Origin: Penicillus capitatus
Taxonomy: Eukaryota; Plantae; Chlorophyta
Length of the DNA stretch: 64,000 bases
Assembly: GCA_965649825.1 (NCBI GenBank)
Contig: OZ287704.1
Coordinates: forward strand, 48,001 to 112,000
Direction: 5' to 3'
Shown here: positions 1 through 64,000 of the stretch, piece by piece
Numbering within the stretch: position 1 is the first letter of the stretch
How the letters are laid out: each line of letters begins with the position of its first letter
Made by a program: the position numbers and the translations under genes
Notes under the pieces: generated by a model
What the model was told of the DNA's origin: nothing
Databases searched by the model: none
What the model saw: the letters and a program-made list of their open reading frames with translations, nothing else

Positions 1-691
1 TGTCGACAGCAGCATCTGTCCTCGACTAGAGACGCCGCCGATGACGGAGATCTGGCAGCGAATGGGAATCGATCCCTTTGGAGCACCCGGTTCCTTGTCT
101 CCATAACAGACCTCTCTATAACAGAGGTATCTATCCGTAGGGACGCTGAGTGTCTGTTCGGCAATAACAAAGGCACTTCAATCGCTGCACGTACGAAAAG
201 GAGGGTTCTCTGGACTGATGTTGCCAGTCTGCGAAGATGCTGGCCTCGTTGCAGCTGCTAAACAGGTCATCTCCTTTTGTGAGGACCCTTGTTGCGGAGA
301 TCCATTGTCTGCTGGCAGAAGTCTTTTGGAATTCGGGATCTGTTGCTCTACTCTACCGTCTGTGCCTGTGGTCTGGATTGTGTTCCTGTTCCGGGTTACG
401 GTGATGATGCTCAAGAGAACGTAACCCTCGAGAGGCGCATGGCATCATATTTAGCAGATCTCTGTTCCCTTGCCACCAGGTTTCTCACACATCTCACACA
501 ATCTGTCCTCTCACTATCGTATTCTGCTAGATTGAAGAAGCCACTCAGTTGTCGATTTCTGCCGGCCCATGGGAGAAAACCAGGCGAGAAGACAACGTTT
601 AATTTTCCGTATCTGCTTGACGGCAGCGTCATGGAACTATAAGACAAGCACTCGAACGCACAGTCTTTTTCAAAAGAGGTTCTCAGTCTGT

Positions 692-4251: not shown

Positions 4252-4318
4252 GCAGATGTTGGTGATGCGACGTTTCGTCGTGACCGTTTTAAAGGCATCG
4301 TGATGTGACGTTACTGTA

Positions 4319-5390: not shown

Positions 5391-6196
5391 CTTCGACGCA
5401 ACGCCGTCGACACCTTCGAATGCACGAGATAGCGAAGAAATGATCATCATCCAGACAATGTGATCAGCACGCATGGAGTCTGGAAGCGTGCAACTGGGCA
5501 GGGAACAGCTAAGAGACAGCAATGCGTTTTTCAGGTTCTACACTGTCCATGGCGATGATATGGTGCGTGAATACCAGGATGATATCATGTAAAGCCGGTT
5601 CACGATTGTTGTATGCCGTGGTGTCCCTTTGGCTTATGCCCTGTTCTGACAAGTGACGACACATGGCATTCAGTTTCATGGCAGTGCTATTCCTTTTGCC
5701 TCTGTGCCCGATTTCAGTAAGCGAGTAAGAGGCACGCGTATTCGAGTCATGTAATACGTTGCGTACACGGATGGGGGAGTTCCGTCAGTACCGTGCATTC
5801 GGTGTCTTTTTTAGCCACCCTCCGCCGGCTAGTCCATTCTTTGCCGAGGTCGCGGCTGCTCGTGCTAAATTCACAGCGGATTCCTTTTAATCCAACCGAC
5901 ACACACGTCAGCCTCTAATCTCGAAGCGGTTAAGCCTTCGCTTTTCCACGGCGCTTTCGAAAAACGCATTCATGTGGTGGCATAGATACCTGCGCTCGTC
6001 AAAAGCACAGACCCCCATAAAGAATTCCGTTCTTGAGGGATTCTAGACGCGTCAAGAGTGCCCCTTGGCCAGAGGTAAATTCTTTAAATCTGCCACGCAA
6101 CCGTCAGGAGGAATCTACCATACTTATGGCTCTTTGCTGATGGACTGCCCATTGTCGTTTGTCCATGCGCGCTGCACGTCTTGTACTATTCTTCCA

Positions 6197-11390: not shown

Positions 11391-11802
11391 GGTTTTTGAA
11401 ACTATTGCACGAAACTATGACAATTGATGATCAACAGAAAATAACGCAGCGCCATCTGTTGCTGTCTGACGATGCTTTGTGGTTATCTCCTCGATATCTC
11501 TTGTTGCTAGCAGAAGTTTGATTATGACATCTCGTTCGCGCTCAACGTTTCCGGCAACGCGTTGTGCAACAGTGAGAGTATGCTCCAAGTGCTCCTGCAA
11601 AGAGAACAACGGAATTCTCGACGAGTGACAATGATGACGTCATCTTGACGAGCGGTGCTGCTGAGGAGAGGCTAGCAAGTAAACTTTGTAACCACGTGGC
11701 ATCATTTAAGGCGGCCTGTCTCATTGCCAATAGTCCAAATCTACCTGTGCGTTTTGAATTTCTCCCCTTAGCGAACGTGTGTCGGAAAGAGAATAACGAC
11801 CC

Positions 11803-14800
11803 ATGCCGCCGCGGGTTCTGAGCCTATTCGCCTTGGCGTTATGGCTATCGTCTGTTTTTGCGAAAGGCGGTAAGAAAGCATCAAAGAAAAGGCGAACTTA
11901 GGATGTTTGGTCACAGTTAAGGGACAGTCTCGTGTACTGACACAAACGAACGATTCAACCGAAGTGAAGACTGTCTCCACTGAAAGAGAGCTCAATGACG
12001 CATTGAACGCTGGGCGTCGGGAAAGAAGTCTGAGACTGGCCGTCGACGAGATTCGACTCTCGGAGCCATTGGTGGTTGACGTGCTTCGCGTTTCCATATC
12101 GGGAGCGGCAAACGGCACCGTCATTCACTGTCCGCCGACAGACGGTGCGTTCGTTATCAAGCAAGGCCGCCATCTCTGTATTGACGTACGGCTAAGCCAA
12201 AACCTGTCTTTGCAGGAACGGGAGCGTGTGGCTGGCATCCGTGACCATTACCGGCTGTCATTCGCATTCTGCCGTACAGATAGAATCGAAGAGCGAGCCA
12301 ACCGATGGCGTTATTGACGTCGTCTTCAAAACGGTGTACTTCGTAGAGAATGGAAAAGGTGGCGACATCGAAGCTGGAGCGGCAACGCGCGTCGAGTCCT
12401 GTGGAAAGGGCTCTTGTGTGCGACCCGTGGTCGAATTCAGACGGTGTCGTTTCGATCGCAATCGAGCTGCTATCGGCGGAGCTATTTACGCGACGGATTC
12501 CAAGATCCGCATCAACGACTCGATATTCGAAGAGAACGAGGCCAGCCTTTCTGGCGGTGCTTTGTTTTTTAGCAATACCGATGATGCAGAGTTGACCATC
12601 GAAAATTCCACTCTTCATGGGAACCGGGCTTTAGGTCAAGACAAGCCTCGCGAAACGAAGGCGAGAGCACTCCTTCCGTCGACAGAAGACATCCCGGACA
12701 TGTCTGGCATGGGCGGTGCCGTTTTCGCATACGATCCTGCCCGTCTATACGTAAACGCGACCAACTTCACAGATAATAGCGGATGCCAAGGAGGTGGAGC
12801 GATGATCGTTGTTCAAGCGGCGGCTGGAGCAGCAAACAACGGCACGCACAGTTTCAACATCTCGCACGCATTGTTCGAAGGAAATGCTGCGTACTGTGAT
12901 GCTAAAGATGCCTCTCGGCTGAATGATTATTATAACCAGATGTATCATGGCGGAGCCTTGATGCAAGAGTCCTCCGATTCTATGGTCCATGACTGGACAA
13001 TTATCCATTCCGAATTCCGGCAAAACCGTGCAGCGCTTGGCGGCGCTATCAGTTTTCTTTCCCGTTTGAGGTCGGATGTAGAGCAGAGTGTCATTTCTTG
13101 CAGCTTTATTGAGAATGATGGACTGGTCGCCGGCGGCGCGATTCTGCTGGACGCAACTCGCTTAAAGATCGTGCGTACGGAGATCCGAAACAGCAGATCG
13201 GTTTTTGGCGGCGGTCTCGTCGTCAGACGCAATGCTTTCCTGACGATCGTTCAAGATCCAAAATACCCTGCAGCAAATAGCAGCAGCAGCATCATCGAAG
13301 GAAACATTGGCGTATATGGCGGCGGCATGTTTGTAGATTCTGGCGGTGGGTGACTCTCACCTTACTCAAGACTCGACTCATTGTACTTCGTAGGCGTCCA
13401 TTTAGAAGCGCTGACTGTGCGCAACAATATCGGATATCGAATCGGTGGCGGCTGCCGATTCTTGTCCACGGATCGGCCTTCTTTCCTTCGCGGCGTCCGA
13501 ATCGAAGGCAATCAAGCTTTTGCAGGCGGTGGCATTTCTTTGGGCACGATCGACAATGTCACCTTGGTTGGACTGGGAGAGAAATACAGTGTCATTGCAA
13601 ACAACACGGCAACAGTTGGAGGCGGCCTATATTACGAAGCAGGAGAATTCTACATCTCCTTCATTCGAGTAAGGACCCAGGCAAATAGTCTCTTCGCATA
13701 ACAGACCCGTCGCAGATAGAAGAAACGTTGTTCATTGCCAACAGAGCCTTATCGTCGACGAGTTCAGAGATCGTGGCGTTCAATCGCGAGGCGGAGAAGT
13801 ATCACCTGAAGTATTCTAAAGGGGTAAACGTCTCTAATATCAACGAAGAAACAGAACGCTCCTCCGTTATGGAATATATCAAAACAAGAGAATCGGGACA
13901 TGGCGGCGGCATCAGCATCAACGTATTTCGTACTCGGCCATTCATCATCCACGAAATCGCTTTCCAGAACGTCACGGTTGTCGAGAATGCAGCCATCGTT
14001 GGAGGTGACTTCGTTTGGGAATGTATCTTTGGCATCTTCATTGCTCAGGTGGAATATCTGTTCAGACAAAGAAGGTTCACAAGAATGTCGCCAGCAACGT
14101 TTCCTGCTCCAGTGCTTCGCTTGGTTTCGATACGTGTCAGAGGATTGTGTTCCGCAACGTTACCGTCGCACGGAACAAGGCAGAGTATGCAGGTGGACTG
14201 TTTGTATCTTCTCTGGACTACATGACATTCTCGTGTGGTCCCAACGCGACATGGGCAAGCGATACGCACGAGCCATCGAAAGCCATGGTGGATCAACGGC
14301 GACCCTTTTGCACAGAGATCTCAAACAATACCTTGATCAATGCATCCGCTACAGAAGCGGCCGATATTGGCACACGAGTTGCCAAACTGTCTGTCAAGGG
14401 AGAACACCATCAGCTGAAGCCGATGGCCAGCGGCGACACACTTGTCGTTGTGTGCGAAGACATCCAGAATGCAACCTGTAACCGTTCCTTGGAGATCCTT
14501 GTGAAGGACACTTTCGGTCAGCGCATTGAACAGGGACTCGACGATGCCAACCTGGAACTCACACTCTCCTCTGAAGCCATTCTGGGCGACCACCGATACA
14601 AAGCCATCAGAGGGACGGCTGTGATCGACAGTACTCAGGCCTTTGGTGTGAATGTCAATAAGACACTGATGATCGCTGCTGAGGAAAACCGAGACGTCTA
14701 CGTCCAGCTAGACCTCACCACAAGGGCGTGCTATCCAGGAGAAGTCATTCAGTCAAATCACTGCGCCACCTGTGCCGTTGACAAGTATGAATTCGATCCA

Positions 14801-16925
14801 TCCCAGGAGAAATGTCGAAGCTGCGAAAAAAATGCACGATGCCGTGGAGGGGCTGCGCTTGTGCCGATTGACGGGTACTGGCATTCCACTCCATTCTCGC
14901 CCGTCTTCTGCAAGTGCATCGATCAGAAGGCCTGCCAGTATGGAGGAAGGACAGACAAGCTCATGGCTTTCTATGAAAATGCTAGTGCATTGACGTCGCG
15001 ACTGAGTGCTCTGAATAAATTTATCGAAAAAGGAGGTCAGATGCCAGATTTCTCAGAATACCAGCAGTGCCTTGAAGGGTACGATGGGCCGCTCTGTGGT
15101 TCTTGTCAGCCGGACTACGGCCATTCGCACTCCTATGGATGCGAAGAATGTCCACAGGAGAAGACGACCGGCGTCCGCTTGACATTCGTAGCGGTATGGC
15201 TTTTCGTTGTGATCGGGTTGAACTGTGTCGTCACGTTGATGACCACCAATACCAGAATTGCATTCGCCAAATACGAACGGCAAGCAAAGATCATCACCGA
15301 AACAAGGGTTCTTCAAAGAACGGAGCACATTCAGGCCGCGCCTGTGCGAATCCCTCATCCTTTATCGGGCGAATCAGGTTTGTTAACGAACGATGTCATG
15401 CGCCTTCCCTTGGCCACCAGTAGCACAACCGCAGTTGCCGCCGCCACCCAGAGAAGACTCTATGCTCAGCAACTCATGCTTGCCGTTACCTTGACAGAGA
15501 TTCTTAAGGTCATGCCCGGCACGCACTGAACAGTTTGGAGACTCTGTTTCAGATTCTGGTCAACTACTTGCAAGTCACGGGCACTGCCTTACGCTTACAG
15601 ACGGAATGGACGGGGCCGCTTCGTATCCTGTTGCAGTTCGAAGGTAATTGCTGGTCAATCATATCTAGTCCTAAAATCGTGTTGACTCAGCTGGGTGGGT
15701 CGGATTCCTTGACGCCTTCATGTCGACTCCATTCGAGTGCGGTCTGGAAAAGGGTATCGCACCCGCATCCGTTTCTGCACTGTGGATGCGATTAACCATG
15801 CCGTGGTTGGCCCTGGCGGCTATAGAACTCACCTTTGTACTTGTCTGGCTCTGCACGCAACGCTATCGACACATGCGGGAGTTTCAACTCCCAACCTGCC
15901 TCATAGTGATCGCTCTCGTGTCTGTGAACTTCTCCTTCATCGACGTCACCAGAGAGCTCATGAGAGCCGTCAACTGTGTGCAGATCGCAGAGATGTGCAC
16001 AGACGATTCTGCTGGACATCCTTACGGCAACTATTCCTTGGACACAGCCGGAAGACTCTGGGCTGAAGACACGTCGCTGGTGTGTTTTGAAGGGAGTCAT
16101 TTGCCGCTCGGCATTGTGGGAATTATTGGACTCGCTGTCTCCTTCTGTGGAATCGTCACCATCATTCTCTGGCTGCCGATGAACAGAGAACACGTCGGAA
16201 AGAGCCAGTTCATCGCACGGTACTGGTTTATGTACCAGGCCTACAGAAACGAGTGGCATACCGTGTCCTGGGAGTCCGTGATCCTTGCAAGGAAGTCTGC
16301 CATCGTTGCCGTAGCGGTGTTCTCTGTTCATCTGAATCCTAATTTGCAAGCCGCCATGTGTGCCGGAATTCTAACCGTCGCTGTGGTCTTGCAAGCAATG
16401 TTCACGCCGTTCAAGATTCCGGAGAAGCACATCAGCCTGCCAGATTACGCCGGAGACATCTTCAAAAGGTTCTGCCTTCAGAACGTTGGACGTTGGTGGA
16501 TGCAATTCAACGATGCCATCCATCTCAATCTCATCGAAACTGCTTCGTTGGCATCTTCGGCAAGCGTCTACTTTTCAGCGATCGTCCTTCAAGATTCCGG
16601 TTCGTCTGTGCACGGGCGTCGAACAATATCAACCCTTTCGTTCGCCGCTAACGTGGCATTTGTGCTGTATGTTCTGTATCGTCTGTACGCTGGGGTCCAT
16701 CTCCTGTTGGATCTTAAGTTGGAGCAAGGCAATACGGCTTTCATAGCGGAGCATGAAAACGGAATGGGAATTCTCAGTCTCATCAGGAAGATCTGTGCCT
16801 TCCTTCGCGTTTTGCGCAGGAGTCGAATGGCGGACAGACTCATGGATGACGGCGTAGAAAAGAGCAACACTCTTGAGTTGAGTGTTTTACATGATCGTGA
16901 AACTGTAGAGACGGCGGCTGCATGA
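11803..16925 (+). CDS. Beta-helix, Cys-rich, multipass membrane protein, paralog 2
   Basis: Signal peptide MPPRVLSLFALALWLSSVFA; same motif series as paralog 1 (ORFs 11907, 12226, 13381, 14015, 15720). Confidence 0.85.
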
Positions 16926-17941: not shown

Positions 17942-20900
17942 TCAGAGATTCAAGTGGATCAGACCCCACTTTCTTAGTAACTGGCCGAGAAATTTGATAA
18001 GGGTTTTTATAAATTCCCATTTCTGGAGGAACTGGTTGGTTTCAACGGCATTCTGAGGAATCTTCCAGAGAGTTCTTCTTTCTTCCTGAAGATGAGGGCA
18101 AGTGAAAACATGGATTTGATCTTCGTCTTGCATCTGGCAGAGGCGGCAAAGTTGTGATTCGGACTTCCCTATACGGCAGAGGTGGGTCATTGCAGGCCAA
18201 TGCGCTAGCAGGTACTGCGCGAGTAAAGTGAGCTCGGAACGTCTTAGTTTTCGAAAAGGCCATTTGGGCCATGCATAGAAGGGGCCCCACCGGAGGGCCG
18301 ATCGGCCAGCCGAGGGGTTGGCTTGCTCCCAGTCTTGGACTTGCTGTGTTCTTATGATTTCTCGGATACTTTCCTTCCAGTCCTTGTAAGACAGCTTCCA
18401 GGGGGGTTTGAGACCCTCTTTAATGCGTTTTTGCAATTCGATTGCTAGCTCCAGTTTCCCTGCTGTGTAGGTTGCCTTGGGAGGCTGCGACCGTGAGTCT
18501 TGTGTTTCAAGAAGGGGCTCCAGTACTCGGCGTGGGAGGAAGAACGCTGACCTCAGAAGGAGTTCTTTGTATCTTGTTTGAATGTTCTCAAGTCCCGCAA
18601 GATGGATCACTTCTGTGAACGGGGAAGATGGGAGCGCGCCAAGTATCCAGAGAGAGCACAGTCGGATGATCCGGTCTAGCGCCAAGTGGATGGACTTAAC
18701 CCGGAGTCGAAAGCCCCATGCTTCAATCGCATACGTGAGAATTGGGAGGACAGCCCCCCTGACCAGCTGTCTTAGGACCGTAGGGCTGGTGCCAAAGTAT
18801 GTAGAGGCAATCATCTTCATCTGCGTGAGGCGGCGGAGTGCTGTTGCCCGAATAAAGTCCACGTGTTGGTGCATCAGGAGGCGCCGATCGATTTGGATGC
18901 CAAGATAGCGTAACGACTGAGCTGGCAGTAAAGTCTTGTTGTTGAATCGGAGATGCGGGCTTGTTTGCTTACGAAGGCGGGATATAAAGATCGTTTGGGT
19001 CTTGTCTGCGTTAAATTGCATCTCGAACTTGATTGCCCATGCTTCGAGTTTCCTTAGGGTCATTTGGACGTCCGTTGCGTCTGTGCCGTCCGCGTTGAGC
19101 TCCCTCCAAATCACTAGGTCATCCGCGTACATTTGTCCTTCCACCTGACCGGTTAACGACTCCAGTATACTATTAGCATACGTTATGAAGAGAGCTGGTG
19201 ACAGCGGAGATCCTTGTGGGAGACCTCTTTGCGGAAAATGTGTCCAACTACCTGAGCCTACTGACAAGGAAGCTTCACGTTGTCTGTAGAAGCCGTCCAG
19301 TAAACGGAGGAGGGGCCTTGGAACTCCAGCGTCTTGAAGTATCTTCCACATGACATCAGGGTCGGTTGAGTCGAAGGCGGCTTGAAGATCGAAGGAAATG
19401 ACCAATAGTTGCTTCTTGTTGTTGAGGGCGTTTGTGGCCTTCTCGAGGATGCGGGAGATTGCTTGAGTCGTGGATCGGTTCCTGCGGAAGCCGTATTGGT
19501 GCTTTGACCATTGCCCTGTGCCCTCCATGTGACTCGTGAGTCGGCTGCGGAGGAGCGTCTCGAACTTCTTTCCCATGCACGACAAGAGCGATATGGGGCG
19601 GTACCCAGCGACGTTTGTTGGATCTTTTCCAGGCTTGGGAACGCTGATGATGTTGGCCTTCCGGAAAGCTGCCGGGAAGTATCCTAGGACGAAGCATGCA
19701 TTGAAAATCCGGCACAATGGATGTGCCAGAAACTCTCTTAGCTTTTGAAAGAGCAGGTTTGGGATTCCGTCAGGGCCGGCTGCCGCGAGAGGTTTCCCAC
19801 TCTTGAGGACTTCAAGGACTTCAACGGTCTGGAATTCGTTATCTTCTGGTTCGAGGGGCGGCAAGGATGCGATCCAGTTGCGGTGAGTATGTGCACAGTG
19901 TGATTTATGCGACTCTGGACTATGGGGTGCCGGTTGTACAAAGTACTTTTTTGCCAGCTCCGCTGCAATCTTGGAGGGTTCCACGAGCGTTTCTTGCGGA
20001 GTCTTGAGGTAGTCAATGTCATAGGAGCGTTTTCTTCCAGTCAGTCTCTGGACTCCATTCCACATGCTGTCGTTCCCGAGGGAGGCACAGAAGTCCTGAA
20101 AAGCCTTTTGCTTTTTGGTCCGGGCTAGCGCCCGGAATTCCTGGATGCGGATGTTTTTTACCTCCTTATTGACCTCCGTGGGGGACCTTTTCCACGTGCG
20201 CTCGGCGTCCTTCATGCGGAGATGTTGCGCGCGAACTTCCATGTCGTACCACGGCCTTGATTTGTTGCACACTCGCTTAGCTGGGACGTGTTTCTGGATC
20301 AGACGCTGCAGTGTCTCCGTAAGCATTCCGACGCTATCATCAATTTCTTGTTTGGTGCAGATTGGAAGTTCTTCATCTCCCATGAGGCCCAGGTTTTGCA
20401 GGTCAATTTCCAGATCTTCGGAAGCTTGATCCCAGTCGGCTTTTTTCCAGTCCAAACTCGTCCGTATTGGAGCTTTGTTCGGGGACAGTTGTAACTGTGT
20501 GACAATCAGCTCATGGTCTGTCACCGCAATTAGATCCTCTTCCACGCGCCAGCTGGTAACAATGTCGAGCACCGGACTAGTGACAATGCTGAGATCAATC
20601 CAGTGTCCTTTTCCCCGGGCGTCATGGAACGTTGGAGGAGACTCCAAGTCGTTGAGGACCACCATCCCAAGTTGTATGATCATGTCTTCAAGGGACTCTC
20701 CGATGGGATTGGGTTCAAGGACCGGGCTCCACAGAGGACTATGACCATTGCTATCTCCGAGGGCAATGATTTTCGGATATCTGGGGCGTGCAAGTTCGAT
20801 CATTTCCTTGAGTTGGAGAAGCGCGGTGTCTCGATCGGCAGGTTTGATGTAGAAGCTTAATAGACCTAAAGGACCTTTACCAGTTCGGAGGGTGATCCCA

Positions 20901-21175
20901 GTGGCGAATTCCATGGGCGTCGTTAGGAGGGAATATTCCAATTGCTTGTGTAGGAGGAAGCCCGCCCAGCATTCTTTGTCTTTTATCCCAATCCAACGGA
21001 AATCCTCCACTCCGGATATCTTGTCCGAGCGTAATTTCTGGGGTGGGTCGGATATTGCAATGACGTCCATCTCAGTGATAAGTGGTATATGCATGAGTGA
21101 GTCCAGTGCTTGAATGCTCGCTCGGAGGTTGATTTGTCCAATCTTTATTTCTCTGTGTTCCGAGGAGGACCACAT
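17942..21175 (-). CDS. LINE ORF2: AP endonuclease, reverse transcriptase, C-terminal Cys/His motif
   Basis: 1077 aa; GDSNGH, HWIDLS, TDHELI (APE); YRPISLL, QYGFR, GLPQGSPLSP, YADD, YLGI (RT); CRLC..H...C. No RNase H seen. Confidence 0.95.
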   Translation of the reverse strand: MWSSSEHREIKIGQINLRASIQALDSLMHIPLITEMDVIAISDPPQKLRSDKISGVEDFRWIGIKDKECWAGFLLHKQLEYSLLTTPMEFATGITLRTGKGPLGLLSFYIKPADRDTALLQLKEMIELARPRYPKIIALGDSNGHSPLWSPVLEPNPIGESLEDMIIQLGMVVLNDLESPPTFHDARGKGHWIDLSIVTSPVLDIVTSWRVEEDLIAVTDHELIVTQLQLSPNKAPIRTSLDWKKADWDQASEDLEIDLQNLGLMGDEELPICTKQEIDDSVGMLTETLQRLIQKHVPAKRVCNKSRPWYDMEVRAQHLRMKDAERTWKRSPTEVNKEVKNIRIQEFRALARTKKQKAFQDFCASLGNDSMWNGVQRLTGRKRSYDIDYLKTPQETLVEPSKIAAELAKKYFVQPAPHSPESHKSHCAHTHRNWIASLPPLEPEDNEFQTVEVLEVLKSGKPLAAAGPDGIPNLLFQKLREFLAHPLCRIFNACFVLGYFPAAFRKANIISVPKPGKDPTNVAGYRPISLLSCMGKKFETLLRSRLTSHMEGTGQWSKHQYGFRRNRSTTQAISRILEKATNALNNKKQLLVISFDLQAAFDSTDPDVMWKILQDAGVPRPLLRLLDGFYRQREASLSVGSGSWTHFPQRGLPQGSPLSPALFITYANSILESLTGQVEGQMYADDLVIWRELNADGTDATDVQMTLRKLEAWAIKFEMQFNADKTQTIFISRLRKQTSPHLRFNNKTLLPAQSLRYLGIQIDRRLLMHQHVDFIRATALRRLTQMKMIASTYFGTSPTVLRQLVRGAVLPILTYAIEAWGFRLRVKSIHLALDRIIRLCSLWILGALPSSPFTEVIHLAGLENIQTRYKELLLRSAFFLPRRVLEPLLETQDSRSQPPKATYTAGKLELAIELQKRIKEGLKPPWKLSYKDWKESIREIIRTQQVQDWEQANPSAGRSALRWGPFYAWPKWPFRKLRRSELTLLAQYLLAHWPAMTHLCRIGKSESQLCRLCQMQDEDQIHVFTCPHLQEERRTLWKIPQNAVETNQFLQKWEFIKTLIKFLGQLLRKWGLIHLNL

Positions 21176-26111: not shown

Positions 26112-29100
26112 ATGCGAAACACCTCTCTCCGTCTTCGCTTTTTCCTCTTCTCCTTTACATGTGTCGCGTGCGTCGCGCTCAATGAAGGTGACGTGTTGCT
26201 ATCGCCACGGAATCTGCCGTCGCCCGAGAGAAACCGCGCCAAGGCCCATGGCGAATGGCACCGTTCTCTGCACCAGTTTGCGCCAGAAGGGCCCGTGGTC
26301 GTGACTCGGACGTTTTCGGAGCTCCAGCGAAGCTTTGACTCTTTGGTAGAAAACAGTATCGTCGTCATTGACGCCAAGGAGCCGCTGAAACTGGAAGAGA
26401 CGTTAATTGTCGACCTTCCGGGCATTACTCTCCGCGGGAGTTCCGGTCAGTCGACGACACTCATCTGTCCCTCCGTCTCAAAACCTGCTCTTATCATAAG
26501 GTGTCCATTCAATTATTCATCTGAATGATGTGACATTTGAGTGTGTAGAGGGGCGAGGACGCAGGTGGAGTCTTTGAACTTCATGCGATGCGTCAATACT
26601 TCGGTCATCATTGTCGAACCGCTAGAAGATATGACGTCCACCTCTTCTGGGGTTTCGTTTATAAATTTGGGGTTTTCTGATAACCGGAATCTGGGAGGGG
26701 GAGGCGCTCTGCGGGCCGTCTTGCGTACTGGAAATTTGTTTTGTCCCTCATGGTGGATCAACATCGAGAACTGTACATTTTCACAAAACCGAGCGAAGAA
26801 AGGAGCAGCAATATACGCCGAGAATGTCCACCTTGACATTAGGAACTCAGAATTTACTGAGAATCACGCAGATCATTCGGGAGGTGCCATATCATTTGAA
26901 TCTAAATGCCGAGATCCGAATTCCTTGACGATCAAGAACTCCTCATTTGTTGACAACTGGGCCGTTTCTCGTCTTGCGATGGAGGAAGGGGACGATCATT
27001 CTGAATATCTGGCTGGACGGGGCGGTGCCATTTCGGCCATCAATCCCCGAAGCACAAGCTTTCGGGATGTCATATTTGTGAACAACACCAGCTGTGTTGG
27101 CGGCGGGGCGTTGTATGTTCGCATGATAGAGACGGCAGGGCAACGAAACACGACGGCTGAATTCCAAATCGAGAGATCTGTTTTTGAAGGGAACGGAGCT
27201 TATTGCATGGCAACTCCCAGAGCAGAGCTAAGAAACCCTCGTGATCAAAATCACTACGCTGGAGGTGCCTTCCTCTATCGCTCGACTGTCTATCTCCAAA
27301 TGTACTGGACTGTCCGAGACACAAGATTTACTCAGAATCGCGCCGTATACGGCGGAGCTTTGCAAGTGTCGGGCCAACATGAGACGCCGCTCAATTTGGT
27401 CAATTCTTTGTTAGAAGAAAATGGGGCGCTGCAGAGGGGCGGTGCCATTTGCATCCTTGGGGCTCAGCTTAGAATGCGAGGATCAACACTGCGTAGAAAC
27501 GCTGCACTGCTAGGAGGAGGCATCGCTGTCTGGGATGACGGTCGTCTCATGACGCGGCCTCATTTTTCAAACTACTCTTCGGTTTCGGTCATCGAAGAGA
27601 ATTCTGCTTACAATGGCGGAGGCATCGGAATCTTTGTGACAGGTCTTTTCCCAACAACACTTCTCATCCTTCTGCATTTCTGTGTCCTGCGTCAGACACG
27701 ATCGACTTTTCATCAAGCTCAATGGATCTGAGATCTTTGACTGTGAGGAATAATACGGCATTCCATTACGGTGGCGGCATCCGCGTCTTTGCCGTCTCGA
27801 CTGGGCTCTACTTTCGTGGGATTACTGTGGAGGGCAACAGAGCCATGGCTGGAGGAGGATTCGCATTCACTTCTGCCCCTGTTGCACATTTTGAATCGGC
27901 CGATGGGAAAGCGATGCGTATCGTCAACAACGTGGCGGCTGTCGGTGGTGGTCTGCTCTTCGAGATCGGGCACCTTGTGCCCGTCAATATCACAGTAAGC
28001 TGCTTGCTCCCGATGACGCCGATCGGTCTAAAGCAGAAACCGTAGAATAAGGAAGCCGAAATCTCTGGCAACAAAGTGCGCCACTCTTGGCATCCAGACA
28101 TCGTGGATCTCCGCAGAGCTGGCGAAAGCTATCTCCCCTTGCATGGTGCTCCGATACATAACGCCTTTGATTCCATAGATGGCTTCGATGCACGATTGGC
28201 TTTGGACATCAGAGTTGGATCTTTGGCCGGTCATGGCGGTGGCATCTGCATGTCATTTGTCGACATCCTACCCTTTACTCTGGTCGAAGTCTTCTTCCAG
28301 GACGTAGTGCTGCGGGATAACGAGGCAGTGGTAGGCGGAGGTGCTTCGTTGCATTTCACGGATCTCCTTTGGAGCAGAGGAGACATGAAGTACTGCATCT
28401 CTCGTATGATTGGCATCGAATTCTGTCAACGCATGTACTTCAACAATGTCACTATTCGAGACAACCAGGCAGACTACGCAGGCGGCCTCTTCATCTCGCA
28501 TCCAGACAGTGTCATTGTCACCTGCAACATGACAGACGTGCAGCTGAATTCCACCTTCGAAGCCGTCTACAACAGAAAGATCCAGGCACAGGAAGTGCTT
28601 GATCCGATGCTGGATCTTCAATGCCTCGTCATTGAGGACAACCGCATCTCTGTATGTCACTTACCTTGTCAAGACGTGTGTTTCGATGAGGATGGTGCGA
28701 TGCAGGATGGGGAGACTGTTGATGGAGCGGACGTTGGCACTTTGGCAAGGGCATTGGCAATCGATGGCCTAGAGGAAGGAACGGATCTGAGACGCGTGGC
28801 CAGTGGGGAGAAACTCTCTCTTCCGTGCGACGAGAAGGGAGAGAAAGCGTCATCCTGCCTCGAAGGATTCACAGTCTCCGTGTTGGATGCTTTCAATCAG
28901 ACCATTTCCAGAGGCATCGATGACGCGTCTCTGGAGCTGTCTTTGGAATCGCCAAACATCGGAGGTGCCATTCATTATGTGACAAAGCACGGTGTGGCTC
29001 GGATCGACGCGACGATGGCTCGAGGAATCGGCGTCGAGTCTTATGTGACCATCCTGAACGACCGAGAGCCTTCCATTCGGACGCAAGCGGTTTTCTCCAC

Positions 29101-41522: not shown

Positions 41523-42203
41523 TTGTTTTCCTACGCTATGAGCCTATGGTTCGACGGGGAGAAGATGGCGGAAGTCGAACATAGAATGTATGTGACTCAA
41601 AAGTTTGTCGAATTCGTTGGAAGCAAGGCCGACGAGGGACCGGTGGAGGAGGCCGACGAGGGACCGGTGGAGGAGGCCGACGAGGGACCGGTGGAGGAGG
41701 CCGACGAGGGACCGGTGGAGGAGGCCGACGAGGGACCGGTGGAGGAGGCCGACGAGGGACCGGTGGAGGAGGCCGACGAGGGACCGGTGGAGGAGGCCGA
41801 CGAGGGACCGGTGGAGGAGGCCGACGAGGGACCGGTGGAGGAGGCCGACGAGGGACCGGTGGAGGAGGCCGACGAGGGACCGGTGGAGGAGGCCGACGAG
41901 GGACCGGTGGAGGAGGTCGACGAGGGACCGGTGGAGGAGGTCGACGAGGGACCGGTGGAGGAGGTCATGGAGGTAGTGGCGGCTTCTAAACGCCGCGGTT
42001 CCAAACGCCTTCGCCGGTACGCCGTGGAGTACAAAGAGGAAGCGGAGAGGGTAAAGAGGGTAAAGGAGGACCATGGCCTTCGCGACACGGCGGCGAGGAG
42101 GGAATGGCTGAGAAAGTTGAAGAAGGCGGACAAGGAAAAGCGTAAGGTTAACGGTGATGGGGAGGGTATATCTAAGGTCACTCGGAAGAGGTCGAGAAAG
42201 TGA
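41523..42203 (+). CDS. Acidic tandem-repeat protein (ADEGPVEE x14) with basic NLS-like C-terminus
   Basis: 226-aa ORF whose non-repeat tail is rich in K/R (KRRGSKRLRR, RKRSRK). Coding status unproven. Confidence 0.45.
   Translation: MFSYAMSLWFDGEKMAEVEHRMYVTQKFVEFVGSKADEGPVEEADEGPVEEADEGPVEEADEGPVEEADEGPVEEADEGPVEEADEGPVEEADEGPVEEADEGPVEEADEGPVEEADEGPVEEADEGPVEEVDEGPVEEVDEGPVEEVMEVVAASKRRGSKRLRRYAVEYKEEAERVKRVKEDHGLRDTAARREWLRKLKKADKEKRKVNGDGEGISKVTRKRSRK
41627..41962. repeat. 24-bp minisatellite, 14 copies
   Basis: Unit ggccgacgagggaccggtggagga; the last two units carry c>t. Confidence 0.97.
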
Positions 42204-43095: not shown

Positions 43096-43391
43096 CTGGC
43101 ATATTTAAACGAACAACGCGAACCATGTTTTGCCCTTGCTCTGTAAACGAAAAAAGTCTTCCGCTGTTGGTATTTTCTGTCCGACCCGACCGGCGACAAC
43201 AGGTTTGTGCCGTTTGTCTTGGGATGTCGACAAGACTGGAAAGCGCCCATTCGAGACAAGGTTTCGAATGTTTTGTTTGCTGGGGGCAACGGAAGAGACG
43301 TTGTGTTCTTCGGTCGAATGGTTGAATGGGTTTGTGACGGGCATGAATTGGATAAAGGTATCGGAAGGTGTTCAGGCATCTTTGAAGCCGT

Positions 43392-43638
43392 GGCTGTTTC
43401 TCTGGCAAGACGGGTTCGGCGGCCAAAAGCCGAACCGGCTCCATTCGGACTCATTTCACTCTGGCCGTTTCTCTGGCAAGTTGGGTTCGGCGGCCATAAG
43501 CCGAACCGGCTCCATTCGGACTCATTTCACTCTGGCCGTTTCTCTGGCAAGTTGGGTTCGGCGGCCATAAGCCGAACCGGCTCCATTCGGACTCATTTCA
43601 CTCTCTGGCCGTTTCTCTGGCAAGTTGGGTTCGGCGGT
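43392..43638. repeat. 71-bp tandem repeat, about 3.4 copies, each with a hairpin
   Basis: Units start at 43392, 43463, 43534 and 43607; GGTTCGGC-N8-GCCGAACC stem in each full unit. Confidence 0.93.
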
Positions 43639-44947: not shown

Positions 44948-47900
44948 TCAGGGCTTCAACAGATCCTCGAGAGTTGAACGAATCTCTGCGGTGCAGGTGG
45001 ATGTCGAGACACAGATGACGTCCAATGGCGTCTTGCCGCTCTTTCCTTCTATTGTTTTCGAGGCTCCGTGAGCCAAAAGAATCTGAAACCGGGGTGTCAA
45101 ACAAAGAGGTAACAACCTGTTTACCTTGACAATCTCGACGTGTCCCTTGCGCGAGGCCCAATGAAGCGATGTGAAGCCAGAACGGTCAGCGACATTGACT
45201 CCGGCTTTGTATTCCAAAAAAATCTGTTGATAGACGATTCGAAACTACCCATACAAGCGGATTCTGTGGTCACCTCGACGACATCAACATATCCGTTGCC
45301 TGCTGCCAACATCAGCGGCGTTTTCTCGTTTTGGGTGACATCGACGTGGGCTCCACCGTCCAGAAGAACCTATGGCTCATTCGCCGTCAGCATCGTCTCG
45401 ACGACGGAAGTCCGATAGCTATACCTTGGCGATATCGGCGTACCCGAGATTCGCCGCCGTGTGGAGAGCCGTCCACATAGTACTGGACGCAAGGTTTACA
45501 TCAATTCCGGCATCCACCAGAATCTACAGAGCAATCACTTGCGAGACACCGAAGCTAAACGCTTACCTTCAGGATCTCGAGCTGCTCAGATCTAACCGCG
45601 CTGTAAAGAAGATTCCACTCTCCTATGCGCAAGCTGGCGCCGGCTTCCAGCAGAACCTGTCGGTCTATACGTTAAAACAGCTCATGTAAGCGGATGTTGC
45701 CGTCACCTCGACGACGTCGACGTGTCCCTTGGCCACTGCAAACATTAGCGGCGTTTTCTCGTTTTGGATGACGTCGACGTGAGCTCCACCGCCCAGAAGA
45801 ATCTATCGCTCATTCGCCGTCGTCTCGATGGCGGCGGTCCGATGATTTACCTTGGCGACATCGGCGTACCCGAGGTTCGCCGCTGCGTGAAGAGCAGCCC
45901 ATCCGTTTTTGTCGGTCAGGTTTACGTTTATTCCGGCATCCACCAAAATCTGCAGAGCGATCACTATGCGAGACACCGAAGCTAAACGCTTACCTTCAGG
46001 ATCTCGAGCTGCTCAGATCTAACCGCGCTGTAAAGAAGATTCCACTCTCCTATGCGCAAGCTGGCGCCGGCTTCCAGCAGAACCTGTCGGTCTATACGTT
46101 AAAACAGCTCACGTAAGGGGATGTTGCCGTCACCTCGACGACGTCGACGTGTCCCTTGGCCACTGCAAACATTAGCGGCGTTTTCTCGTTTTGGATGACG
46201 TCGACGTGGGCTCCACCGTCCAGAAGAACCTATGGCTCATTCGCCGTCAGCATCGTCTCGACGACGCGAGTCCGATAGCTGTACCTTGGCGATATCGGCG
46301 TACCCAAGGTTCGCCGCTGCGTGGAGAGCAGCCCATCCATTTTTGTCGGTCAGGTTTACATTAATTCCGGCATCCACCAGAATCTGCAGAGAGATTGCTA
46401 AGCGAAACACGCGTGAGGCGGAAGAGTTACCTTCAGGCAGTCGAGCTTCCTGGACCTGATGGTGTTGTAAAGAAGATTCCACTCTCCTATGCGCAAGCTG
46501 GCGCCGGCTTCCAGCAGAACCTGTCGGTCCATGTGTCTGTGTCGCTCACGTAAGGGGATGTTGCGGTCACCTCGACGACGTCGACGTGTCCCTTGGCCAC
46601 TGCAAACATTAGCGGCGTTTTCTCGTTTTGGATGACGTCGACGTGAGCTCCACCGCCCAGAAGAATCTATCGCTCATTCGCCGTCGTCTTGACGACAGGA
46701 CTCCGATGACTTACTTACCTTGGCGACATCGGCGTACCCGAGGTTTGCCGCTGCGTGGAGAGCCGTCCATCCATTTTTGTCGGTCAGGTTTACATCAATT
46801 CCGGCATCCACCAGAATCTACAGAGCGATCACTTGCGAGACACGCGAAGCTGAACGCTTACCTTCAGAATCTCGAGCTGCTCAGATCTAACCGCGCTGTA
46901 AAGAAGATTCCACTCTCCTATGCGCAAGCTGGCGCCGGCTTCCAGCAGAACCTGTCGGTCCATGTATCTGTGCAGCTCATTCATGTAAGCGGATGCTGCG
47001 GTCACCTCGACGACATCGACGTGTCCTTTGGATACTGCAAACATTAGCGGCGTTTTCTCGTTTTGGATGACATCGACGTGAGCTCCACCGTCCAGAAGAA
47101 TCTATCGCTCATTCGCCGTCGTCTTGACGACAGGACTCCGATGATTTACCTTGGCGACATCGGCGTACCCGAGGTTCGCCGCTGCGTGAAGAGCAGCCCA
47201 TCCGTTTTTGTCGGTCAGGTTTACGTTTATTCCGGCATCCACCAAAATCTGCAGAGCGATCACTATGCGAGACACGCGAAGCAAAACGCTTACCTTCAGG
47301 ATCTCGAGCTGCTCAGATCTAACCGCGCTGTAAAGAAGATTCCACTCTCCTATGCGCAAGCTGGCGCCGGCTTCCAGCAGAACCTGTCGGTCTATACGTT
47401 AAAACAGCTCATGTAAGCGGATGTTGCCGTCACCTCGACGACGTCGACGTGTCCCTTGGCCACTGCAAACATCAGCGGCGTTTTCTCGTTTTGGGTGACG
47501 TCGACGTGGGCTCCACCGTCCAGAAGAACCTATGGCTCATTCGCCGTCAGCATCGTCTCGACGACGGGAGTCCGATAGCTGTACCTTGGCGATATCGGCG
47601 TACCCGAGGTTTGCCGCCGTGTGGAGAGCCGTCCACATAGTACTGGACGCACGGTTTACGTCGATGCCGCCATCCACCAGAATCTATCAAGCGATTGATG
47701 AGCGAAATATGCGTAGCCGAACGCTTACCTGCAGGCAGTCGAGCTTCCTTGACCTAACGGTGTTGTAAAGAAGATTCCACTCTTTTATATGTATGTCAGC
47801 TCCATTATTGAGGAGGACCTATATTTCGCCACGTCATTCTCACGCCGCAGAGAGAGATCGTCGTTGTTCGATCACCTTCAATGCTGCGGCGTGTCCATTA

Positions 47901-49747
47901 ACTGCGGCTTTGTAAACCACTGTCGTTCCGTTTTTCTGCCGAGAATCGACATTGGCGCCGGCTTTCAACAGAACCTGTTGAAAGACCAATGATGTGACAG
48001 AGCAAGCGACTGTATGTGAACGTCACCTCAATAATCTCGACATATCCAAGAAACGCTGCCACGTGAAGCGGAGTTTCACCATCGGCAGGTGCAGCTTCCG
48101 GGCGCGCGCCCATATCGATGAGGACCTTGAGTCAACAACAGTCCTCGAGATCAATAGACGCGTTTGACAGCAAACGCGGCGTAGTTTATTGATTGCTGAA
48201 CAGGCATACATATGCGTAACGCATGAACGCTCAACCGTTTTAATGTGACAAGATGCAGCACAGTCGATATCACGTCGCATACCTCGGTGCACTCAAGGGC
48301 GTCGTTAGCAGCGGCCCAGTGCAAGAGTGTGGAGCCTGTCTGCAATGGGTAACCCTCCACAGTAGCGCTCTCATCAAACTTACTGTCGACTTCCAAGCCA
48401 GCCAATACAAGTGCCCTGGCATCCATCGCATCATCTGCTTGAATTGCAGACTTCATCTTCTATTCCGACACAACAAACGAATACACCGAGTTTCGTTTCG
48501 GCGAGACTTACGGCAAGCATCTCATACGGCGACAGCAGCTCGTACTCTTTACGCCGTTTAGTCAATTCCTTCGTTTCTTTGCCTCGACGCTGCAGTCACG
48601 CGGTCATGGTGTCGGCGAAGAGTATTCGCCAAATCTTCGCTCACCTTTGATCGACTTTCGATTACTTCTTCGATCCAGTCGAGAAAGTAATCGACGTTTG
48701 TGTAGATAGCGGGTTCATACCCACTGCACTGTTCGGATTCGTCTGCCGCGTATCCGTAGGACGTGATTCCGACGATCAAGTCCAGACTCGGATCTCCCTT
48801 TTCGATGTATCTCTTCGGAGAATCGGCCAACAGCAATGGACCACCCGAATCGCCTGTCGCAGCAGGTCGTGTGTGAATGGTAGATACACGACGCGGAAAC
48901 GACACGACACATTACCTTTACATGTGTCTTCGCCCAGACCGCCGGCACATATCCAGCTGCCCGCGTCCGTCACATTGGGTGGCACTTCACAGTGTTTCTG
49001 ATCGACGATGGCCAACCGATCGGTAACGCGCAGCGTCTTCGCGACAGCAGCAGATTCGGTCTTGCCCCATCCCGCGGCCGCCATATAGTCTCCAGCCGTA
49101 ATGGTGATATTGCCCGATCCCAGACGCGGTCGCGTCAGACCCTTTGCCTTTTTGTCCAACTTCAGCAGGGCGATGTCGTATCCGTCTCCCACATCGCCTG
49201 TAAACTTGGGGTGGACGTGTCCCTCGACGACATCAAACACCTAAAAGAATACCGACGTGCGGCATCGCAAACGGAGCTCGTCTGTCACTCGCCTTATCCT
49301 GATCTATTTCGTCGACTTTGTGGACGCCACAGTGGACGACGGGGGATAACCCGACCGACCCTTCGATTCGGGTGTCTACGCAGTGTGCCGCCGTCAGAAT
49401 CCAGTCACGTCGGAAGAGCGTCGAGCCGCACACGTGCTCTCGACTGCCGCGCCTGCGCAAGCTGCACATGTAAGGAAAACGCCCCGGTGGCGCCTTCTTT
49501 CCCGCCTGCCCATCATTTCGGTCGGACGAACAAACAAACGAACATGTGAGAAAGGCATCGTCGTGCCGTTTACCACGATTTTTTGGTAGATGATAGAGTT
49601 GTGAAAGTCGCGTTGGCCGTTTTCTGCCAAGCACAGAGGTTTCTTAGATGTGCAAGAACGCTTCGCATTCTTCCTACCGTGGCTACAGGAACACGACGGT
49701 AGTGCGAACAATAACATGCACACCGCCAGGTAAAGACGCGTCGCCAT
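44948..49747 (-). CDS. Predicted secreted trypsin-like serine protease fused to ~23 ankyrin repeats
   Basis: Signal peptide MATRLYLAVCMLLFALPSCSC; TAAHC, YDIALL, EDTCK|GDSGGP; in-frame splice path through a 78-nt linker exon (48512-48589) into ankyrin exons; stop at 44948. Confidence 0.75.
45280..47820. repeat. ~430-bp tandem unit x6 (three ankyrin exons plus three introns)
   Basis: Recurring ttaccttcagg/aaagaagattccactctcc block near 45562, 45989, 46427, 46858, 47289 and 47725. Confidence 0.95.
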
Positions 49748-52660: not shown

Positions 52661-55600
52661 ATGACTGCCATGCACTACCGCTGTGCATTGCTTCTCCTTT
52701 TTGCCCTTCCCCTATCTCTATCGCAGAGAGGTGCGTGCGTGCTCGTAGTGCAGCGATACAGACTGAGAGCGTCGATTTCTTTAAAATGTAGTGCGTCAAG
52801 GAGAGCGTTTTCGGGAGGAGAATGCGCAGGTTGTTACCGTTCGAACGGAAACGGAGCTTCGACAAGCGTTGCTAACTTTGCGGAAAGGACAGCTCATCGC
52901 TGTGGATGCCGCGGAGATCGCTTTAACGGACACTCTTACCATCGCTGTGCGCAATGTCACACTCAGAGCCGCGCGCGAGACACCTGTTGTCGTTCGGTGT
53001 CCCCGCAGAGCTAAGCGAAATGCACTGAGAATCCAGTACGTTTCGATTTTGTCTCACACTTTCGTGAGAGGACGTTGTCTTACATAGGCGAGGTCACACA
53101 CGAATCTCCTCTCTGCATTTCACTCACTGTACCGAAGAGGCCGTCGTCGTCGAGCGTGGCAGACGTCGAAGAGTGAGGGCAACATTTGAAAATGTGCATT
53201 TCACACACAACGGCGCAACAGAAGGCGGGATTCATGGAGCAGCTGTCCGAGCAGATGCCTGTGCGGCTGGTAACGTGTGTCCAGCATCACCCGTTCTACG
53301 ATTCCAATCCTGTACATTCGAACATAACCGAGCCTCTAAGGGCGGGGCGATCTTCGCAGAGGATGCGTATATCGTCATCAACCAATCCACCTTTTCCAAG
53401 AACACGGCCGCCGTCACTGGAGGCGCTGTCTATTTTCGAAACTCGCAGAATACGACATTGACGATCGAGGGGTCCACATTCGAGGAGAATACTGCTGGAT
53501 CGGAAGAAGGAGAAGATATAGCTTTAAACGCTGGTCCGCTGGATTGGTTTAATCTTACATTGCTCGTAGTCGGGCGCGGCGGTGCCGTTTTTGCGCACAG
53601 TCCTATGGAAATCTCCATCCGCCGATCTGTCTTTTCAGACAATCTCGGCCGTCGGGGAGGGGGTGCCATTGCTGTCCTGTGCAATGAGATAAACACATCC
53701 GAGATCACGAGGGGATATAGAATAGACGATTCCCGTTTTGAACGGAATGCGGCTATTAGCGAAACACATCGGGGTTTCGAGCTGCCGCAGCCTTTTCTGT
53801 GGGCGCCGCACGTCGGCGGAGCACTTGCTCATGAAGCTCTCAATTCGTCGTTATCACAGGCTTGGACGCTCAAGAACATATCCTTCCTGGACAACGTTGC
53901 CGTTAACGGAGGCGCCCTCAGTTTTCGCTCCCTGACATCCGTGACAGGGCCGCACAGAATCTCTACCTGTATCTTTGAACGGAACATCGCCACGAGAAGA
54001 GGCGGATCGATTTCTCAAGACACATCCCATCTCGTCATCGTCAACACGACCTTCGTGCACAGCAAAGCTCTCTACGGTGGATCGATCGTAGTGAATGAGA
54101 ATGCCATACTGGATTTCGAGACCGATCCAGAGGACGCATCACTCCTCAGCTACATCGAGAATTCGACCGCCGTGTACGGCGGAGGGATTTTCTCTATCGG
54201 TGGAGGTAAGTACATCTCACTCCTCCGGAAGCAGACTGTGGATGCCTAGGCGATACCCACCTCGCTGCTTTGGTCCTTCGCGACAATGTGGCCATGCGCA
54301 GTGGAGGTGCAATGACCATCCAAGAAAGCACCGGAGTCGCTAGGTTGTCTGGCCTCCTTATCGAGAACAACCGTGCCTATGTCGGCGGTGGTATCGAAAT
54401 CTTGAGCATCGCTGCCTTCTCCGTGGTGTCTGATGATTTCCGGCCAACGGTGATTCGAAACAACACGGCTGTGACAGGAGGCGGTCTATACTATCGTGCT
54501 GGACTATACCCTCTTCTTCTTTTCCGAGTAAAGCACATAATTCGCAGGCCCGTGCTAAATCTGACATACAGATTGCGGACAGTTTGTTTATCGGCAACCG
54601 AGCGCTGCCGGCCGATTCCTCAGAAATGAAGGAGTTAGAGGATGCCAGTCGAAGCTACTCGCCATTATCCTCTGCACACGAACGGGCACCGAACTATTCG
54701 AGGCATCTGGGGAATTTTTCACTGCTCGAGTACATAACTGATGGGAAAGAGGGATTCGGAGGCGGCATTGGTGTATCCTTCTTGGATGTGCAGCTGTTCA
54801 CGGCCGTCGAAGCAATTTTCGAAAACCTGCAGCTTGAAGAGAACGAGGCTGTCGTGGGAGGTACTATCTTATCTGGAGAAACAGTCTTTCTTCATCGTTC
54901 TCTCCAGGTGCCGTTGCTGCGCTCATGGATCCACTCTACTGGAATCAAGGCCACAGAAAATCATGCTTCCCCATAGCCATCGGTCTAGATGCTTGTCAGA
55001 TCTTCGTGTTCTCCAACGTGACGGCGACTCGGAACAGAGCTGATTATGCAGGAGGCGTCTTTTCGAGCCTGCCGGAAGGAATTGCCGTCGCGTGTGCTGA
55101 CGACACGCCTCGTGTCACCGCTCGCAACTTCACAGGATTTCTTCCAATCGCCGATTCGCTTTTTTCCTACTGCTCGAATATCTCCGCTAACGAGATCTCG
55201 GATAATGTGGCAGCGCACGGGACCGACGCCGCCACCAATGTTGTCTTGTTAGTGATCGAAGGATGGAACGGACCGTTGAAACGCGTCGCCAGTGGAGAAC
55301 AGTTGCGGATTCCCTGCCAAGACACCCGTAATGCGTCATGCTCACGGGAGCTCAGAATTCTGGTGAAGGACATCTTTAATCAGACGATTGTTCGAGGCGT
55401 CGACGATGCCAATCTGGAAATTATGCTCGTGTCGGACGCCGTGGTTGGAGACCTCAGGTACAGAGCAGCGAATGGCATTGCTGTGATCAACAACACGGCT
55501 GCCTGGGGTATCAACGTCTCCACCACACTCACGATCGTCAGCGAACGCGATCGGAGTATCCGACTCGACGTCGGGCTGTCTACCAGAGAGTGTTATCCAG

Positions 55601-63729: not shown

Positions 63730-64000
63730 GAGGTCATTGTAGCCGCGGAAGCTGCCTTCTCAGTCCTTCGGTGGAAGCGACGGGAGCGCTAAAGCGCGCA
63801 GCAACGTGGGGCCGACCCCACTTCACCTGGCAGTGGCGGACGGACGAGCGGATGATGCGAAAGTGCGTCATGACGTGGAATACAATTTTTCAAGGCTAAT
63901 CGCCTATACAGGCACTGCTCCGCGGAGGAGCCGACATCGAAGTCACAGACGAGACAGGACTGACTCCACTCTACTACGCGGTCTTGTCCGAGAAGGTGGA
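63730..64000 (+). CDS. Ankyrin-repeat protein, partial (runs off the window end)
   Basis: PTPLHLAVADGRADDAK|..ALLRGGADIEVTDETGLTPLYYAV. Confidence 0.75.

Follow-up and report, generated by a model that had tools for sequence, protein, structure and literature searches.

The window examined here, a stretch of 64,000 nucleotides (nt) of the green alga Penicillus capitatus (assembly GCA_965649825.1, contig OZ287704.1, positions 48,001–112,000), contains an array of ankyrin repeats in which nearly every repeat is a separate small exon and a group of three such exons occurs six times over. An initial annotation of this DNA suggested that the array could generate a combinatorial recognition repertoire, possibly for immunity, which raises the question of whether the locus is such a system or has simply grown by tandem duplication. 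The array proves to form the C-terminal end of a larger gene that also encodes a protease and reaches position 49747 (positions refer to the window unless another locus is named). It is most probably an ordinary recent tandem expansion of an exon cassette in the ankyrin tail of this gene, kept uniform by recombination, and not a diversity-generating system.

Exon structure of the ankyrin array

When the reverse strand is read between 44.8 and 48.8 kb, the ankyrin peptides switch frame at GT..AG borders. A search for open AG|(3n)|GT segments recovered each repeat as a separate exon, and explicit splicing yielded a model whose frame stays open between the ATG and the stop codon; its introns are of the GT-AG type apart from one GC-AG intron. 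The whole inferred gene (44951–49747, minus strand) would comprise 29 exons and encode, as spliced, 1086 residues, consisting of a signal peptide, a propeptide, a trypsin-like protease, a linker and 23 ankyrin repeats. From the exon designated N1 to that designated T1, each repeat occupies one exon of 90, 96 or 99 nt that starts directly after AG and ends directly before GT. All 22 introns of the ankyrin part are in phase 0 and interrupt the repeat at the identical position (..K/E|V/I-L-L..); their lengths are 42–57 nt, except for the intron between N0 and N1 (157 nt). The spliced model bears out the earlier description of one repeat per phase-0 exon of 90–99 nt with a fixed position in the repeat, and Pfam confirms the ankyrin repeats themselves. 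Pfam matches were obtained over multiple stretches with Ank (PF00023; 400.5 bits, E = 5 × 10−125, cut-off 21.1) and Ank_2 (PF12796; 462.8 bits, E = 7 × 10−142, cut-off 27.3).

Counted as independent positions (N0|N1, N1|N2, N2|C, C|A, A|B, B|T1 and T1|T2), seven of seven introns are in phase 0, for which the chance by phase alone is (1/3)^7, or about 5 × 10−4. A second, divergent ankyrin gene lies at 63743–64000 on the plus strand and runs past the right edge of the window. Because this unrelated gene has an intron at the same position of the repeat (..DAK|gt..ag|ALLRGGADIEV..), this placement of introns is not special to the array. The same placement occurs in the related loci L002, L003, L012 and L013.

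Five ankyrin exons, all on the minus strand, are not amplified. The spliced model and Pfam place N0 at 48459–48283, N1 (99 nt) at 48125–48027 and N2 (99 nt) at 47974–47876; at the C-terminal end, the spliced model places T1 (99 nt) at 45223–45125 and T2 (132 nt including the stop codon) at 45082–44951. Two cysteines encoded by exon T2 are conserved almost without exception among 37 aligned family members. The initial annotation had located the array at 45125–48460; the feature itself is real, but it lies on the minus strand, the ankyrin part extends from 48459 to 44951, and a start at 45125 misses the last exon.

Between N2 and T1 the exons C (90 nt), A (99 nt) and B (96 nt) form a unit that is present six times, as had been recognized at the outset and as both the spliced model and Tandem Repeats Finder (period 435, 5.8 copies, 85% matches, 45255–47783) confirm. 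The units are 427–437 nt long and together span 47818–45224 on the minus strand. Unit 1 (47384–47818), at one edge of the array, consists of C1 (47818–47729), A1 (47683–47585) and B1 (47529–47434) with their introns. It is followed by unit 2 (46952–47383; C2 47383–47294, A2 47248–47150, B2 47101–47006), unit 3 (46521–46951; C3 46951–46862, A3 46817–46719, B3 46666–46571), unit 4 (46084–46520; C4 46520–46431, A4 46383–46285, B4 46229–46134) and unit 5 (45657–46083; C5 46083–45994, A5 45949–45851, B5 45802–45707), and unit 6 (45224–45656; C6 45656–45567, A6 45523–45425, B6 45369–45274) forms the other edge.

The units are similar but not interchangeable. In the six-unit alignment their pairwise identity is 75–93% (exons 78–98%, introns 70–87%), and each can be distinguished by private substitutions and insertions or deletions. 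Units 2 and 5 are 93% identical overall and nearly identical through C, the following intron and A. As peptides, four of the six C exons are identical, as are A2 and A5, and B3 and B5. The sequence ASSTMWTALHT is present in A1 and A6, while C1 carries LYNTVRSRKLDC and C4 carries LYNTIRSRKLDC; these peptides had been reported correctly and at the correct positions, apart from one residue in C4, which reads LYNTI.. and not LYNTV... As to the suggestion that the variants fall on binding surfaces, the A1/A6 patch is the only one that touches the canonical hairpin binding positions; the C patch is located in the helices.

Amplification, recombination and selection

The closest homologous locus, L002, has a protease fragment 76% identical to that of the window and the plan N0-N1-N2-C-A-B-T1-T2 in a clean open reading frame (ORF) of 614 aa, a length usual for the family. 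It contains a single C, a single A and a single B between N2 and T1, and the rest of its exon plan is as in the window. N0, N1 and N2 have one-to-one counterparts there (71–82% nucleotide identity), and in blastn comparisons units 2–6 of the window each align to one and the same segment of L002. The same single-unit layout is seen in L012, a second copy of this locus (99.3% identical to L002) from a contig of lower coverage. As the closest relative's gene follows this plan with a single C-A-B block, the six-fold array appears to be a lineage-specific amplification of the three-exon cassette.

The exons of four related loci (L002, L003, L012 and L013) match those of the window by position and not across positions; L003, L012 and L013 have repeat exons of 99 nt (AG|..|GT) separated by introns of 44–54 nt, while a further locus, L014, stops short of the ankyrin part. 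In L013 a two-exon cassette (an X-Y pair) is present twice at 7673–8217. The Bryopsis gene BSKO_04794 (L004 8719–10196) likewise contains a pair of exons of 102 and 96 nt twice, with intron lengths of 444/317 and 452/313 nt. These two-exon duplications appear, from the sequences compared, to be independent. Together with the contrast of six units here and one in the closest relative, they agree with the earlier view that unequal recombination changes the number of cassettes. When metagenome DNA was scanned for a 19-mer conserved in exon C, the seven loci obtained were without exception chance matches of 20 nt.

Synonymous divergence (dS) is lowest for units 2 and 5 (0.06) and reaches 0.57 among the other pairs of units, compared with 0.55 between the window and L002. 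The amplification would therefore have begun around or after the split of the window and L002 lineages and gone on until recently. All 18 duplicated exons and all 36 of their splice sites are intact, with no stops or frameshifts, even though dS reaches 0.57.

The ratio of nonsynonymous to synonymous divergence (dN/dS), estimated by the Nei–Gojobori method, is 0.08–0.49 in all 15 pairs of units. With each variable state counted once, there are 37 synonymous and 43 nonsynonymous changes; synonymous changes thus make up 46% against an expected 24% (p = 1.6 × 10−5). The duplicated exons are under purifying selection. An excess of nonsynonymous change, whose absence the initial annotation had itself named as evidence of a plain tandem expansion, is not found among these units.

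The patchiness of the variants was analysed by a recombination test on the six-unit alignment (62 informative sites, 1891 site pairs, 5000 permutations). Of the site pairs, 787 do not fit a single tree, and compatible sites cluster strongly: the neighbour-incompatibility score is 0.278 compared with 0.416 ± 0.017 on permutation, none of the 5000 permutations being as low (p < 2 × 10−4). Units 1 and 4 share a block of variants at alignment columns 56–125, running from midway in exon C across the following intron; units 1 and 6 share a block at columns 170–203, inside exon A; and units 1, 4 and 6 share a block at columns 228–315, comprising the end of A, the entire intron and the start of B. Exon C4 is a mosaic within itself, with a 5′ half like that of C2–C6 and a 3′ half like that of C1, and A6 changes within the exon from A3-like to A1-like sequence. 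Unit 5 is a three-part mosaic, resembling first unit 2, then unit 3 (exon B) and then unit 1 (last intron). Since the shared blocks cross exon–intron borders and the switches fall inside C4 and A6, exchange was not exon-wise: tracts of this kind are characteristic of repeats that recombine by gene conversion or unequal crossover, and not of exons exchanged as units. A strict higher-order repeat of three units was considered and rejected; the lag-3 pairs 1–4 and 2–5 are similar but 3–6 is not, and the pairs 2–3 and 3–5 are as close as 2–5.

Polarization of the variants with L002 as the outgroup shows that the form LYNT..KLDC of C1 and C4 is ancestral, whereas the ASSTM hairpin common to A1 and A6 is derived. 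Fourteen outgroup states lost in C2–C6 survive only in the 5′ half of C1, and the 3′ part of B6 diverges from B1–B5 and retains outgroup states. A frame-keeping deletion of 3 nt is common to all six B exons. The mosaic has three sources: ancestral states kept in C1 and C4, a derived block common to A1 and A6, and tracts of recombination. The patchy exon variants noted initially are thus real, but shuffling of exons does not account for them, as the tracts cross exon borders and the C1/C4 variant is ancestral. The divergent 5′ half of C2–C6 shows a weak preference for N2 as its closest exon (27 of 36 positions), ahead of T1 (25 of 36) and C (22 of 36), and a chimeric founding junction is tentatively considered as its origin.

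Interpretation of the array and comparison with known systems

The expansion is probably best explained as follows. Before it took place, the family would already have had one small phase-0 exon per ankyrin repeat. Unequal homologous recombination between neighbouring repeat exons could then have duplicated the C-A-B block with its introns (∼435 nt), and more unequal crossovers would have brought the count to six units. The inner copies would then have been homogenized by continued unequal crossover and gene conversion, leaving the edge copies with more of the ancestral sequence. The patchy appearance of the array would then arise because the edge copies kept more ancestral sequence than the homogenized inner ones. 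The product would probably be a secreted zymogen-type protease tethered by a flexible linker to a solenoid of 23 repeats that could act as a docking scaffold. The expansion would have lengthened this scaffold from about eight to about 23 repeats by adding near-identical modules, and not provided a library of binding specificities.

Several observations weigh against this account. A1 and A6, at opposite ends of the array, share the derived hairpin block, which a simple model of edge versus interior copies does not predict. The window and L002 can be aligned only at the gene, for ∼0.6 kb upstream and for ∼1.2 kb downstream, and tblastx comparison of the flanks, used to assess whether L002, L003 and L013 are orthologous, showed nothing above noise farther than ∼0.6 kb upstream. 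With the orthology of L002 unproven, the proposal that one unit is the ancestral number would draw on the closest available homologue and on the typical lengths of family members. Cassette content differs among the relatives, suggesting that such arrays change readily in evolution. In the comparison of the window with L002, the ankyrin exons have a dN/dS of ∼0.3–1.0 and the protease one of 0.15; the faster change of the ankyrin exons fits relaxed constraint, and some adaptive change would also be compatible with it. A single constitutive mRNA is assumed as the most likely case.

Exon skipping, or somatic or germline unequal crossover, might alternatively turn the array into a generator of combinatorial binders, possibly for immunity. 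The ankyrin exons are all multiples of 3 nt with phase-0 introns, so any subset keeps both the frame and the repeat register; in this respect the earlier statement that loss, gain or skipping of exons leaves the frame intact is correct. The alga is a coenocyte with many nuclei in which somatic variants could coexist. Cassette number and content vary between related loci, in Bryopsis the family has many clustered members, a pattern often seen in fast-evolving families, and the A1/A6 patch replaces a hairpin that includes canonical binding positions. Brown algae also provide a precedent (PMC3341825, PMC11378527). Such a repertoire is nevertheless improbable here, given the dN/dS of 0.08–0.49 with its synonymous excess, exchange tracts that disregard exon borders and a C1/C4 variant that is merely ancestral; moreover, both copies of the relative's gene (L002 and L012) share the same single unit, and the gene has no attached signalling domain. 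The modules are so alike as peptides that their combinations would hold little information, and because most of them are identical or nearly so, exon skipping would mostly produce length variants. Introns of 42–57 nt also suggest splicing by intron definition, under which exon skipping is uncommon. A broader version, also improbable, is that the trypsin–ankyrin proteins of siphonous green algae are a lineage-specific family for recognition, defence or wound response with cassette-labile tails, in which unequal exchange or exon skipping among millions of nuclei would vary the length or specificity of the scaffold within an individual. A role in wound or defence reactions of the giant cells is speculation; if the family did act in such reactions of giant single-celled algae it would deserve experimental work, but this locus alone is no evidence for that.

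The extra repeats could instead be functionless passengers of a neutral expansion, or the gene could be turning into a pseudogene. One unit is enough for the relative, constraint is weaker on the ankyrin part than on the protease, the 30-residue C repeat is degenerate and the ASSTM hairpin lacks the consensus residues. Decay is nonetheless unlikely in view of the purifying selection on the duplicated exons, the 18 exons that have lost neither frame nor splice sites despite the divergence between units, and the deletion in exon B, which is present in all copies and keeps the frame. Tandem repeats of ∼435 nt are also a classic site of assembly errors, and the six units might be an over-expanded or mis-joined version of fewer copies. 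This is very improbable, as the units are distinguishable (75–93% pairwise identity, private substitutions and indels), the frame and all splice sites are intact through 18 exons, the mosaic blocks are internally coherent, and dS graded from 0.06 to 0.57 is not expected from the mis-assembly of reads.

A recent tandem expansion homogenized by recombination has partial parallels elsewhere. In the ROCO leucine-rich repeat and NB-ARC-TPR genes of Ectocarpus and other brown algae, each repeat is one exon, and these exon-shuffling genes are candidate immune receptors (Zambounis et al., 2012, PMC3341825; PMC11378527). Those exons are all 72 bp and move one at a time within and among many loci; their ligand-binding residues show positive selection, they are attached to signalling domains, and alternative splicing is reported (PMC3341825; PMC11378527). 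The present array resembles them in having one repeat per small exon, a symmetrical phase, a frame that survives exon gain or loss and a repeat number that varies between loci. It differs in that its exons of 90, 99 and 96 nt follow a fixed order and were duplicated as a set of three together with their introns, the tracts cross exon borders, selection is purifying and the partner domain is a secreted protease. In the nebulin super-repeats, seven domains in four exons are tandemly duplicated as one unit, which is attributed to recombination within the gene (Bjorklund et al., 2006, PMC1553488); there too, several repeats of constant exon layout are copied together. In nebulin, however, exon borders fall within domains and the correspondence is not one-to-one, whereas here an exon is one repeat length, in another protein family and another organism.

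Many exons of the animal ankyrin genes (ANK1–3) are 99 bp long and hold a single repeat. Exons that span whole repeat units with a periodic intron position are described as common by Street, Rose & Barrick (2006), as cited in PMC3995336, and in 26% of the human repeat arrays that changed recently an exon contains no more than one unit (PMC3995336). This general correspondence mostly concerns old, diverged animal repeats, unlike the present young copies (dS down to 0.06) with introns of 42–57 nt in a green alga. As in the concerted evolution of other tandem arrays, the inner copies are homogenized and the edges divergent or ancestral, topologies disagree along the unit and recombination is significant; unlike in the simple model, both edge A exons share a derived block. 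The locus is a new, well resolved example of tandem amplification of an exon cassette with concerted evolution in a little-known algal protease–ankyrin family. It offers a clear and datable case of repeat-protein growth, in which a three-exon cassette with its introns is present six times, the outgroup is single-copy and the recombination tracts are visible. It is useful as a case study and leaves the understanding of ankyrin arrays and of algal immunity unchanged.

The protease, its family and the surrounding sequence

On the basis of Pfam and sequence motifs, the protease part (48645–49747, minus strand) is assigned to the exons P1a (49747–49678), P1b (49623–49574), P2 (49505–49293), P3 (49240–48916) and P4 (48853–48645). 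The profile of the S1 (chymotrypsin/trypsin) serine proteases, PF00089, matches over positions 1–220 of 220 (125.4 bits, E = 3.7 × 10−36), a hydrophobic N-terminal segment lies upstream of the trypsin domain, and the motifs TAAHC, DIALL and GDSGGP are present together with an aspartate at the S1-pocket position and a zymogen-type activation site (YQK|IVAG). The catalytic residues His81, Asp133 and Ser222 are invariant in the alignment of 37 family members. The aspartate six residues before the catalytic serine (EDTCKGDSGGP) and the K|IVAG activation site suggest proteolysis with specificity for arginine or lysine.

A phase-1 intron (..CKG|DSGGP) and an intron before ..VFD/VDVF.. are common to the window, L002 and Bryopsis BSKO_04794. 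The GC-AG intron (49292–49241, minus strand; 52 nt, donor GCGAGT) lies in the protease part, and L002 has kept the same donor. A further phase-1 intron, of 54 nt, directly follows the signal peptide (49677–49624, minus strand); in the window it escapes a check of the frame, its length being a multiple of 3 with no stop, whereas the frame of L002 needs its removal.

The protease and ankyrin parts are joined in frame by the linker exon L1 (78 nt; 48512–48589, minus strand; RRGKETKELTKRRKEYELLSPYEMLA), which has phase-0 splice sites on both sides. L002 has a homologous linker exon of 81 nt with the same splice sites, and relatives on transcript-sized contigs (e.g. P0143 and P0144) encode protease and ankyrin repeats in one uninterrupted ORF. 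The in-frame linker, its conservation in L002 and the single ORFs of the relatives together make a predicted protease–ankyrin fusion well supported in this species. In a structure model of P0143, the closest full-length relative and used here as a proxy, the trypsin fold and the ankyrin solenoid are both predicted with confidence; the ∼40 residues that link them are disordered, and the two modules have no defined mutual orientation (predicted TM-score 0.51).

The protease–ankyrin family is expanded in the siphonous green algae (Bryopsidales). Proteins combining trypsin and ankyrin domains number dozens in Bryopsis sp. KO-2023, mostly on one contig of 7.4 Mb, and several in Ostreobium, and there are many among Logan transcripts (family proteins P0008–P0220). 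Their lengths are 455–979 aa, mostly 540–740 aa, with many transcripts at 540–670 aa, compared with 1086 aa for the window gene, and most start with a signal-like hydrophobic segment. BSKO_04794, BSKO_04809 and the Ostreobium quekettii products share the domain order, the invariant triad and the protease introns with the window protein, and Bryopsidales genes of this type also have mostly one repeat per exon and cassette duplications of their own. These proteins are, however, only 32–40% identical to the window protein, and a search with the whole spliced protein found no relative above ∼40% identity. In the Bryopsis genes, the repeat introns are displaced downstream by some five codons (..AG|A..), with lengths of 100–450 nt.

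No description of a Bryopsidales trypsin–ankyrin family was found in the searchable literature. This large family of putatively secreted trypsin-like proteases with ankyrin tails is a by-product of greater interest than the array, as are the independent ankyrin cassette duplications in several of its members. Two proteins of the nematode Aphelenchoides bicaudatus (P0004 and P0005) are annotated with this architecture as well, for which contamination and convergence are both conceivable. At the related loci, an ORF with a NACHT domain (L002 1593–3062, minus strand) lies ∼7 kb upstream of the protease–ankyrin gene of L002, and ORFs with BTB and protein-kinase domains are found downstream of the genes in both L002 and L013.

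Directly downstream of the window gene, at 41626–41964 and 43391–43637, are a 24-nt tandem repeat present 14 times (99% matches) and a 71-nt repeat present 3.5 times. An intact ORF of 1077 aa (17942–21175, minus strand) belongs to a non-long-terminal-repeat retrotransposon of the long interspersed element (LINE) type, with endonuclease and reverse transcriptase domains. At 1253–5425 on the minus strand, there are MutS-family ORFs and an intronless OST3/OST6 gene, the product of which is closest, among named proteins, to those of Ostreobium quekettii (48%) and Bryopsis sp. KO-2023 (47%). The ENA contig ERZ26696514 ctg303580 (436 kb) is collinear with positions 1–15271 at 84% nucleotide identity. 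These comparisons place the source of the window in or close to the siphonous green algae of the Bryopsidales. Long ORFs with Chlamydia polymorphic-membrane-protein repeats and a β-helix, located on the plus strand at 6657–7916, 12226–13353, 26541–27731 and 53173–54249, form a multi-copy family, and similar ORFs occur in the syntenic relative L001.

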